Shown here piece after piece: positions 7,878 through 11,474 of a DNA stretch of 32,000 bases (position 1 is its first letter; each line of letters begins with the position of its first letter). Position numbers and translations under genes: made by a program. Origin of the DNA: Wallemia ichthyophaga EXF-994. Taxonomy: Eukaryota > Fungi > Basidiomycota. Under the pieces are notes generated by a model, which saw only the letters and a program-made list of their open reading frames with translations, ran no database searches and was not told the DNA's origin. Location: NCBI RefSeq assembly GCF_000400465.1, contig NW_008806285.1, positions 60,001 to 92,000 of the forward strand. Direction: 5' to 3'.

Positions 7878-8565
7878 TTATTTTGGTGTGTTTAATTGAG
7901 GGGTTTTGTCTTGCAATGATTCTGTGTGTGTTTGTTAGAGTTTGGAGTGTTTCAACGATGAAAACGAACCAGAATTTGATTTGAATTGCATTTCTAACGT
8001 GGAAGGCGATTGGTTGAGAGATTTATATATTGAATCTCTAGTTTGGTGTGTTAATGATGTTTAATACGTTTCAAACATCCCCACCTAACGCTATTAACCA
8101 AATCAGGATCTTCCCTTCTAATCCAAACACTTATAATATCCTCTGCTGCCCTTATAGAAACCACAGCTCCGCAGAGATCATTGATATCGTCAACCATATT
8201 ACAACCAATGATACTAAGTAACAAATCTTCCCAGAGCTGATCAACAATACCTTTCCTAAGCCTAAGAATCCATTTACCGCCTTTTATGTTTTCGGGATCT
8301 TCCCAGACAGGTCTTACGCCTGAACGGAATAGCTGGTAATCGGTGACGACGGGGAGAGTGGAAGGTGGTTTAAGATAAGCGTAGGTGTTCCAGAATGCTG
8401 GTAACTGTGACTGGTGTTAGAATTGCGCATTCTCCCACCAAGCACACTACTAACACTATCAAATCCAGCAATTTTAATTAAATCTTTCTGGTAATCAATT
8501 ATCTTTGAAGAAGGTGGCCTATGTATCCCCCAAACTGTCCACGATGTACTCAATTTTAATGTCAT
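7878..8565 (-). CDS. eIF4E-family cap-binding protein, 4EHP/nCBP (class II)-like
   Basis: Removing introns 8405-8454, 8038-8084 and 7922-7969 gives SWTVW...DYQKDL...AFWNTYAYLKPPS...VRPVWEDPENIKGGKWILRLRKGIVDQLWEDLLLSIIG...SIRAAEDIISVW. The ORF track shows only the first exon read into its intron. Confidence 0.93.
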
Positions 8566-8609: not shown

Positions 8610-11474
8610 ATGCATCTAATCACTCTGGCTACGTGAGAATCTACTCCTTTTACTATCATTTCTAATCCATCCTCTAGCTGGTAAATTCGGCTTCATTTTC
8701 GTATAAATATTCTCACCAATCTCACTCAGCTCACTTAACCAATGGGCTTTGGATTTTCAGGGAAATTACGAAAGAATCCTTGAGAGCATCAAAGTCGCTA
8801 AATCTCGCGGTGCTTCTCTACGCGTTGGCCCTGAGCTTGAGATTACGTGGGTCTACTACGCGTTTGATTTCGTTATCCACTTGCTTATCTTTCTTCTTCT
8901 ACTTTTTCCTCTTACAGCGGCTATGGCTGCTTGGATCATTACTTGGAGGGTGACACTATCCTTCACTCATGGGAAATTCTCGCCAAATTACTCCAAGATG
9001 ACCACACACATGGCATCATTTGCGATATTGGCATGCCTCTTAGACATAAGAACGTCACTTACAATGCCAGAGTTATTATCAATGATGGCAAGATTCTTCT
9101 TATTCGTCCAAAGATGTGGATGGCCAATGACGGCAATTACCGCGAACTGAGACACTTTTCTCCGTGGTTGAAACACCGCCAAACGGAGGACTTCTTCTTA
9201 CCGCGCATCATACAATCAACTACCCAGCAGACTACTGTTCCAATTGGTGACATTGTCTTGTCAACGCTCGATACCTGCGTCGGGGTTGAGTTGTGCGAGG
9301 AGCTCTTCACTCCAGCAGCTCCACACGTCAATATGGGTTTGGATGGTGTCGAGATATTCACCAACTCCTCCGGAAGCCACCATGAGCTCCGTAAGCTAAA
9401 TAGACGTATGGAGCCGATCAAGGAGGCTACACTGAAGGTGAGCAGGGGGTGTATCTTGTACCACACCTACAGCTAAATTAACGCATCGCTTAGCTTGGTG
9501 GTATTTACCTGTATGCTAACCAACGCGGCTGCGACGGTGACAGGTTGTACTACGATGGTTGTGCCATGATAGTGTTGAACGGCGAGGTAGTTGCTCAGGG
9601 TCCTCAATTCGCTCTTACAGACGTAGATGTCGTCACGGCCACTGTGGATATGGAAGACGTGCGCTCGCGCCGCACCTCCATCAGCCGCAATCTGCAAGCA
9701 GCACAGAGTGGGGCACTTCCACGCGTACACGTCCCTAAGGCTCTATCCTACGGTGTAGGCGAGAATTTTCTTGCTGCTCAACCTTCCCAGCCCGCTCCTC
9801 TCACTATACACCGCCCCGAAGAAGAAATAGCGTGAGTGGGGATGCTAGCCGAGCCCATGCAAATACACACGCAGACAACTGACGTTCCTCATTTGTTAGT
9901 CTCGGTCCCGCCTGCTGGCTGTGGGATTATCTGCGCAGGTCGCGCACGCAGGGCTACTTCCTCGCACTGAGCGGAGGCATTGACTCGTGCGCTTCGGCTA
10001 CCATCGTTAGCTCAATGTGTCGCCTGGTTGTTAAGGCCTGTCAGAACGACGGTGAGTTTGTGCTTGGGCTTCTGCGCGTGGCTTGCTTGGCTGCGAGCTG
10101 AGAAGCTGAGACACACCCCAGAACAGCACGTACTCGCTGACGTCAGACGCATCACTGGCGAACCCGATCACTCGACGTATGTCCCCGCAGACCATCGCGA
10201 GCTATGCAACAGAATCTTCTATACTTCCTACATGGGCACGGAGAATAGCAGCGACGAGACACGCCAACGCGCCAAGGATCTCGCCCACGATATCGGCAGG
10301 TGGGTACTTTGCTTAGCTATTTGATTCAATGGCGCTGTCTCATCCAAATTACTAACTCCCCTCATAGCTACCACGTCGACATCAACATGGACGCTGTGAT
10401 TGGTGCTATACGAGACCTCTTTGGGTTAGCTACGGGACACAAACCGAAATTCAGAGCACACGGCGGCAGCTATGCGGAGAACATAGCTCTGCAGAATATA
10501 CAGGCACGTCTGCGTATGCTGCTCTCATATCTCTTCGCACAGCTGTTGCCTTGGGTGCGCGGCCGCGTCGGCGGACTGCTCGTCCTCGCCAGCAGCAATG
10601 TGGATGAATGGTGGGTGGTTGCTGTGCTTAGCGCTCTGTGCGCCAAACTAAATGTACTTCAGTCTGCGCGGTTACCTCACCAAATACGACTGCTCGAGCG
10701 CGGACCTCAACCCTATTGGCAGCATCAGCAAGACTGACTTGAAGCGCTTCATCGCTTGGGCGCAGTACGAATTCGACCTTCCGATACTTGAAGGGTGAGT
10801 TGGAGTTTAGCTGGCGTTTTAGCGTGTCGTGCTGAGTAGACCACCACCTCTAGATTCTTGCACGCCACTCCAACAGCAGAACTCGAGCCTATTACCCATA
10901 ACTACGTGCAATCGGACGAGGTAGGTGTTGCGCGGGTGTTGCACACACACTAACAACATACTAAGGCCGACATGGGAATGACGTGTGCGTGCGAGTGTAC
11001 AGCCGAGAGCCGTCCCTGCTAACACTCTTCGCTCAGACGACCAGCTCTCCGCGTTCGGTAGACTGCGCAAGGTAGAGAAATGTGGTCCATTTAGCATGTT
11101 CACCAAGCTGCTGTCTGAGTGGAAAGATGTCATGGCGCCAGCCGAGGTGGGTGCTTGCTTGCTATTGTGTGAGTTCAGTGCGCTAATTGGACACGCAAAG
11201 ATCGCCGAGAAGGTGAAGAAGTTCTGGTTCGAGTATTCGCGCAACAGACACAAGATGACGACATTGACGCCGTCGTACCATGCTGTGAGTTGGTGTGGTT
11301 CGACGGCTTCCCAACTGACTCCATTTCTAGGAAAGCTACTCACCAGATGACAACCGCTTCGACTTGCGCCCTTTCCTCTACAACGCTAGATTTCCCTACC
11401 AGTTCGAGAGGATTGACGACACAGTGAAGCGCGTTGAGCAGCTTCAAAAAGAGGTAGAGACACAGCAAAAGTAA
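8610..11474 (+). CDS. QNS1: Glutamine-dependent NAD(+) synthetase (nitrilase-type glutaminase plus NAD synthetase domain)
   Basis: 13 introns: 8633-8677, 8681-8729, 8847-8917, 9438-9493, 9832-9899, 10052-10121, 10300-10367, 10611-10662, 10795-10853, 10921-10965, 10985-11036, 11147-11200, 11285-11330. Motifs: [18 protein letters not shown], the PELEI/IRPK/LCEEL triad, [38 protein letters not shown]. Stop TAA at 11472-11474. Confidence 0.97.

Follow-up and report, generated by a model that had tools for sequence, protein, structure and literature searches.

The QNS1/NADSYN1 gene of the salt-loving basidiomycete Wallemia ichthyophaga EXF-994 lies in the 32,000-nucleotide (nt) window of contig NW_008806285.1 analyzed here (positions 60,001 to 92,000 of the forward strand) and very probably contains a constitutively included coding exon of only three nucleotides. 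This micro-exon, the trinucleotide CTG at positions 8678-8680 of the window, is read as coding because canonical splice signals flank it and the frame is restored to ATCSLNQW, a motif that holds the cysteine at residue 9 (Cys9). The gene model was assembled by hand and then checked by script. Its elements around the micro-exon are the following:

8610-11474, + strand: whole QNS1/NADSYN1 gene, 14 exons, stop codon included, product of 709 amino acids (aa)
8610-8632, + strand: exon 1, ATG CAT CTA ATC ACT CTG GCT AC, encoding M H L I T L A and the first two nucleotides of the Thr8 codon
8633-8677, + strand: intron 1, 45 nt, GTGAGA...TAG; candidate branch point CTAAT at 8662-8666, with the branch A 12 nt from the 3' end
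8678-8680, + strand: micro-exon CTG, 3 nt; third base of the Thr8 codon (ACC) and first two bases of the Cys9 codon (TGC)
8681-8729, + strand: intron 2, 49 nt, GTAAAT...CAG; candidate branch point CTCAC at 8712-8716, with the branch A 14 nt from the 3' end
8730-8846, + strand: exon 3, C TCA CTT AAC CAA TGG..., opening with the last base of the Cys9 codon

Splice sites and the restored cysteine

With splice junctions marked by slashes, the site (8610-8760) reads ATGCATCTAATCACTCTGGCTAC/GTGAGA...TTTCTAATCCATCCTCTAG/CTG/GTAAAT...TTCTCACCAATCTCACTCAG/CTCACTTAACCAATGG. An acceptor stands directly upstream of CTG and a donor directly downstream (TAG/CTG/GTAAAT), and both flanking introns are complete from GT to AG. 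Their lengths of 45 and 49 nt fall within the size range of the other introns in QNS1 and are not far from the mean intron length of the W. ichthyophaga genome, 61 nt (PMC3849046). When the interior of the 97-nt interval between exons 1 and 3 was shuffled 200,000 times, the arrangement AG/NTG/GT with at least 40 nt on each side arose in 23 shuffles (1.2e-4).

Scripted splicing of the model with CTG included yields the mRNA GCT ACC TGC TCA (A-T-C-S) and the protein ...ITLAT-C-SLNQW..., while splicing with CTG skipped keeps the frame and loses the cysteine alone (ATSLNQW). The corresponding junction strings are CTCTGGCTACCTGCTCACTTAAC or GGCTACCTGCTCACTT with the micro-exon and CTCTGGCTACCTCACTTAAC without it. 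The initial annotation of this DNA had placed CTG at exactly these coordinates between complete introns of 45 and 49 nt, and its statement that skipping would be in frame and delete only the cysteine is borne out by splicing the model. Its description of the exon as near the lower size limit is roughly right, but exons of 1 and 2 nt have been reported in Coprinopsis (PMC12230235).

The residue restored by the micro-exon is highly conserved. All 34 aligned orthologs, a diverse eukaryotic set drawn from fungi, fish, primates, plants and algae, have the cysteine, and in the alignment to PDB 6OFB it stands opposite Cys9 of human NADSYN1. In the AlphaFold model of an ortholog with 75% identity (predicted template modeling score, pTM, 0.89), the first beta strand of the glutaminase domain spans residues 4-13 (LITLATCSLN). 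The earlier proposal that CTG supplies a conserved cysteine in the first strand of this domain therefore agrees with both the ortholog alignment and the modeled fold. Cys9 is not the catalytic cysteine, which belongs to the triad E44/K113/C174. To judge from the modeled strand, if this mid-strand residue were removed, the first eight residues would change their in/out register, and harm would be expected.

The proposed route to the mature mRNA involves two independent short introns. Both carry a GT donor, a branch-point-like motif and an AG acceptor of their own, and each would be recognized across itself (intron definition), the usual mode in short-intron fungi. Since only 3 nt separate the intron 1 acceptor from the intron 2 donor, the factors binding them are probably unable to sit together, and the two introns would most likely be removed one after the other in a manner like recursive splicing. 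The resulting mRNA would restore the invariant Cys9 in the middle of beta strand 1 of the nitrilase-type glutaminase domain. Three points weigh against constitutive inclusion. The donor GTAAAT and the branch motif CTCAC of intron 2 are weaker than those of most introns in QNS1. For Wallemia itself, the argument for inclusion is built from conservation and from orthologs. Finally, skipping is mechanically possible, in frame and not removed by nonsense-mediated decay (NMD), so a minor skipped isoform may exist.

Occurrence of the exon in other fungi

The genomic loci compared were those of W. ichthyophaga, W. hederae (L001), W. mellicola (L002) and five further basidiomycetes. Among the three Wallemia species the intron interiors are 56-75% identical in pairwise comparison, with the interior of intron 1 at 56-61% and its splice sites kept, and the ten bases TAGCTGGTAA are invariant. 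Intron 1 is exactly 45 nt in all three species, and intron 2 ranges over 48-50 nt in this genus and over 48-54 nt in the remaining basidiomycetes. In each Wallemia species, exon 1 ends in GCN AC, the micro-exon is CTG and exon 3 starts with YTC, which together encode Thr-Cys-Ser.

The initial annotation had proposed a search for the same micro-exon in other basidiomycete QNS1 genes, and it was found in all five further genomes and confirmed by RNA-derived contigs in two of these species. The five are:

Pisolithus tinctorius: micro-exon ATG, flanking introns of 47 and 54 nt
Schizophyllum amplum: micro-exon ATG, flanking introns of 52 and 51 nt
Laccaria bicolor: micro-exon ATG, flanking introns of 47 and 50 nt
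Dacryopinax primogenitus: micro-exon TTG, flanking introns of 48 and 48 nt
Rhizoctonia solani: micro-exon TTG, flanking introns of 55 and 54 nt

An exon 1 ending in GCN AC is seen in 8 of 8 genomes, and so is the layout of exon, 45-55 nt intron, NTG, 48-54 nt intron and exon, across Wallemiomycetes, Agaricomycetes and Dacrymycetes. The first base of the micro-exon varies among C, A and T, a synonymous change at the third position of the Thr codon, and the TG of the Cys codon is fixed. To judge from these loci, the substitution pattern of NTG is that of coding sequence and not of intron. By contrast with this layout, ACN TGY is contiguous, with no intron to either side, in Mixia osmundae (Pucciniomycotina), Jimgerdemannia (Mucoromycota) and Colletotrichum (Ascomycota). 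Among the sampled lineages the micro-exon is common to Wallemiomycetes, Dacrymycetes and Agaricomycetes (Tremellomycetes and Ustilaginomycotina were outside the sample), a distribution which suggests that the exon architecture predates the split of these three classes.

Transcript evidence comes from two of the orthologs, Pisolithus and S. amplum, for which there are both a genome and RNA-derived assemblies encoding exactly the annotated protein. The Pisolithus genome reads ...GCAAC/gtacgt...gtcag/ATG/gtaggc...cgcag/TTCC..., and the P. tinctorius Logan contig L004 (1 run) reads ...GCAACATGTTCC..., that is, GCAAC-ATG-TTCC. Likewise, the S. amplum genome reads ...GCGAC/gtgcgt...cgcag/ATG/gtaggt...ttcag/CTCC..., and contigs L006-L009 from 4 separate runs encode the protein with the cysteine; contig L006, read at the junction, gives ...GCGACATGCTCC..., or GCGAC-ATG-CTCC. 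Mature mRNA of these orthologs therefore contains the 3-nt exon. The cysteine is also present in 7 of 7 full-length basidiomycete proteins known only from RNA-derived assemblies. These Agaricomycete exons (P. tinctorius P0172, S. amplum P0202) share with the Wallemia exon its position and phase, after AC of the Thr codon and before Y of the Cys codon, as well as the NTG form, the ATCSLNQW motif and flanking introns, here of 47-54 nt. They differ in their first base, which is A instead of the C of Wallemia, and in that their models are correct and RNA-backed, whereas the Wallemia copies are unannotated.

Alternative readings and the public gene models

The deposited W. ichthyophaga EXF-994 protein (EOR00301.1; P0242, 708 aa) is the 709-aa model minus Cys9 and is otherwise identical; the public model therefore joins exon 1 directly to exon 3. 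If this model were right, CTG would be intronic, the gene would have a single 97-nt intron at 8633-8729, and the Wallemia enzyme would naturally have no cysteine at this position. Removal of such an intron, which runs from GT to AG and has a branch motif close to its 3' end, is feasible mechanically, and in 15 of 15 listed deposited Wallemia models CTG is either skipped or mis-spliced, with about 19 residues of intron-derived sequence inserted. However, gene prediction in W. ichthyophaga was done ab initio by GeneMark-ES (PMC3849046), a program that cannot be expected to find a 3-nt exon, and the deposited 708-aa Wallemia proteins without the cysteine are attributed to ab initio prediction that joined exon 1 to exon 3. 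Models elsewhere err in the same way: in Laccaria and Dacryopinax the exon is skipped despite a perfect genomic AG/NTG/GT, and in Lentinula the skip artefact sits beside correct models. Moreover, an unused ten-base core would have diverged among the three Wallemia species, the cysteine encoded there is present in every one of the 34 orthologs, and a 97-nt intron would be the longest in QNS1, where the others measure 45-71 nt. Taken together, these points make it very improbable that the public annotation is correct.

A different way to dispense with the micro-exon is a single non-canonical intron, GCTACGTG/agaatc...cag/CTCA, in which ACG TGC TCA would encode Thr-Cys-Ser. In the sequence of W. 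ichthyophaga alone this intron gives the same protein, and the two are told apart at the mRNA level by the strings GGCTACCTGCTCA (ACC, micro-exon) and GGCTACGTGCTCA (ACG, non-canonical intron), the junction string of the latter being CTCTGGCTACGTGCTCACTTAAC. This intron would run from AG to AG without a GT donor, and the ortholog transcripts use the micro-exon. In W. hederae (ACGTAA) and W. mellicola (ACGTTA) the non-canonical reading gives no cysteine, but CTG gives T-C-S in all three species. The single intron ACGTG/AG...AG/C was rejected because it fails in these two relatives, and its probability is close to negligible. An Rfam scan of positions 1-32000 on both strands returned no family reaching the gathering score, and therefore no structured RNA that would offer another reading of the micro-exon site.

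The initial annotation had also raised the idea of a single-residue switch, in which the micro-exon would be a regulated cassette. Both mRNAs would then be made, and the protein without the cysteine, for instance with an inactive or destabilized glutaminase, would act as the switch. In-frame skipping is compatible with this idea, and the sub-optimal donor and branch site of intron 2 are of a kind often found at alternatively used sites. Nonetheless, the transcript-derived sequences examined include no clean skip junction. The first protein search gave 90 informative N-termini, mostly from metagenome, metatranscriptome and Logan assemblies, and none of them had a clean ATSLNQW junction; the six without the cysteine carried upstream intron sequence or a Ser in place of Cys. 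Metagenome contigs were scanned as well. A narrower first pattern gave no matches, and a broader one allowing 0-3 nt at the junction matched 11 contigs, all 11 of which carry 3 nt; as these may be intron-less genomes or transcripts, they show the absence of the skip form only. Assemblies in general display dominant isoforms and hide minor ones. A published survey of the whole W. ichthyophaga transcriptome at two salinities (10% and 30% NaCl), which found only one exon-skipping event (Zajc et al. 2013, PMC3849046), counts against the switch, and the mid-strand deletion, with its probable shift of strand register, would look more like damage than regulation. With the seven RNA-derived proteins, the 90 N-termini and the 11 metagenome matches all lacking a clean skip, the switch is unsupported and quite improbable. 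It is similarly improbable that under conditions such as salinity extremes the introns of the Wallemia gene would be removed as one 97-nt unit, giving an in-frame, NMD-immune enzyme without Cys9 and with its glutaminase altered or abolished by the shifted register of beta strand 1. If true, it would be a one-residue splicing switch on NAD+ synthesis, kept since the common ancestor of Wallemiomycetes and mushrooms.

Constitutive inclusion of the micro-exon would place the fault with the public models, and its extent was surveyed in 134 basidiomycete QNS1 proteins (P0121-P0254), made up of the best 120 matches and 14 further listed members of the Wallemia cluster, a 90% protein cluster that holds W. 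ichthyophaga and W. mellicola proteins. Approximately 68 of these models lack the cysteine (ATSLNQW) and approximately 45 have it; the rest show ATYSLNQW, ATSCSLNQW, ATSSLNQW, or truncated or invented N-termini. Lentinula has models with and without the cysteine side by side, and the Laccaria, Dacryopinax and Rhizoctonia models lack it though their genomes carry the micro-exon as AG/NTG/GT. The cysteine-less basidiomycete models are thus an annotation artefact and not biology. The initial annotation had supposed the exon to be invisible to most aligners, and annotation pipelines do miss it, in all 15 Wallemia models listed and in roughly half of those from basidiomycetes.

Several further irregularities were observed among the models. 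Ad hoc junctions with Y, SC or SS for C, or invented N-termini, occur in a further dozen or so models, for example in Blastosporella, Tulasnella and Hericium, as would be expected if the 3-nt exon had been left unmodeled. The 728-aa W. mellicola models (L027:301-460, L028:301-460, L002:1501-1660) use an overlapping donor GTAAAG 4 nt downstream together with the micro-exon acceptor, and then read intron 2 through in frame, adding 19 intron-derived residues. A mutated acceptor in the W. mellicola strains with these models was considered and ruled out, their DNA being identical to that of the reference strain. In the W. mellicola models of 709 aa there is an additional 'ES' (HHLEESGDT), which hints at another misplaced splice site.

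Gene product, related exons and neighboring genes

The full model has the following exons, all on the + strand:

Exons 1-7: 8610-8632, 8678-8680, 8730-8846, 8918-9437, 9494-9831, 9900-10051, 10122-10299
Exons 8-14: 10368-10610, 10663-10794, 10854-10920, 10966-10984, 11037-11146, 11201-11284, 11331-11474
10966-10984: 19-nt exon, GCCGACATGGGAATGACGT, encoding ADMGMT plus 1 nt, flanked by introns of 45 and 52 nt

All 13 introns are GT..AG and 45-71 nt long, and the spliced sequence translates to 709 aa without a stop. The 19-nt exon, also picked out in the initial annotation, is real, and the deposited model already has it right. Pfam matches are CN_hydrolase (PF00795) at residues 6-281 (140 bits) and NAD_synthase (PF02540) at residues 340-603 (82.5 bits); the polypeptide thereby combines the N-terminal glutaminase (carbon-nitrogen hydrolase) and C-terminal NAD synthase domains that define QNS1/NADSYN1. 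The best match is the W. hederae enzyme at 89% identity, and Agaricomycete QNS1 proteins are 70-74% identical. The alignment to human NADSYN1 (PDB 6OFB) runs from residue 4 on with E = 2.6e-128 and covers the translation of exon 3 without a gap. E44, K113 and C174 are invariant columns among the 34 orthologs and align at an offset of +1 to the human chain, consistent with a Glu-Lys-Cys triad. The catalytic triad of the human glutaminase domain is E45/K114/C175. By its predicted activity, the gene product is a glutamine-dependent NAD+ synthetase.

Very short exons have been described in other systems. A long-read annotation of Coprinopsis cinerea counts internal exons no longer than 15 nt in 1,165 genes; 27 of these exons, spread over 26 genes, have a length of 3 nt, while 57 have 2 nt and 13 have 1 nt. 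The same study states that misannotated micro-exons break gene models and that micro-exons have barely been studied in fungi (PMC12230235). Like the QNS1 exon, these are very short internal coding exons in a short-intron basidiomycete. The Coprinopsis catalogue, however, covers one species, whereas the QNS1 exon is traced over three classes and its skipping keeps the frame, giving a silent error. In plants, there is a single-nucleotide exon in Arabidopsis (Guo and Liu 2015, cited in PMC12230235), which is likewise extreme and overlooked by aligners and predictors but belongs to a plant gene for an unrelated protein. In animals, neuronal micro-exons measure 3-27 nt (Irimia 2014 and Li 2015, cited in PMC12230235). 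Together with the 3-bp micro-exon of Drosophila homothorax, they resemble the QNS1 exon in size, in keeping the frame and in placing 1-2 residues into a folded domain. These animal exons are cassettes under tissue-specific regulation; they lie in long introns and rely on dedicated enhancers and factors. The QNS1 exon, in contrast, sits between introns of about 50 nt, appears constitutive and gives no sign of regulation. A further parallel is recursive splicing, which proceeds through AG/GT ratchet points, or zero-length exons. There too the acceptor and donor are almost juxtaposed, implying stepwise removal of the flanking introns; QNS1 differs in keeping 3 coding nt in the mRNA and in having tiny rather than very long introns.

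It was already known that 3-nt exons exist in Coprinopsis, and the Pisolithus, S. amplum and some Lentinula models include this very QNS1 exon. What is added here is the depth of its conservation and the scale of its silent mis-annotation, rather than a new kind of element. In all public Wallemia genomes, the sequence of this essential metabolic enzyme would be corrected by inclusion of the exon, and the same silent one-residue error, or worse, affects roughly half of the examined basidiomycete QNS1 proteins. Since skipping is in frame, no frame or stop check flags the error, and the locus is therefore a good test case for micro-exon-aware annotation. With its synonymous first base and fixed TG, it is also a clear case of a 3-nt exon under purifying selection across three fungal classes. 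Lastly, with its splice sites almost adjoining, the exon lends itself naturally to work on how spliceosomes that operate by intron definition deal with an acceptor and a donor separated by 3 nt.

Two features of the surrounding sequence were also observed. At 8760/8761, between CAG and GGA (D-F-Q/G) and roughly 30 nt downstream of the micro-exon region, an intron is absent from W. ichthyophaga, whereas W. hederae, W. mellicola, Pisolithus and S. amplum have a phase-0 intron exactly at the matching point; in W. ichthyophaga this intron seems to have been lost precisely. Upstream, a neighboring gene on the - strand (8314-8565), whose open reading frame begins MTLKLSTSWTVWG, starts at 8565, 44 nt from the QNS1 ATG at 8610. 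The two genes are arranged head to head with almost no space for separate promoters or 5' untranslated regions. The syntenic neighbors in W. hederae and W. mellicola match the Pfam family IF4E. In W. mellicola (L027:1-264 and L028:1-264, - strand), this neighbor is annotated as a protein of approximately 4,150 aa with IF4E and mTOR/FAT/PI3K-kinase domains, which looks like an erroneous fusion of adjacent genes.

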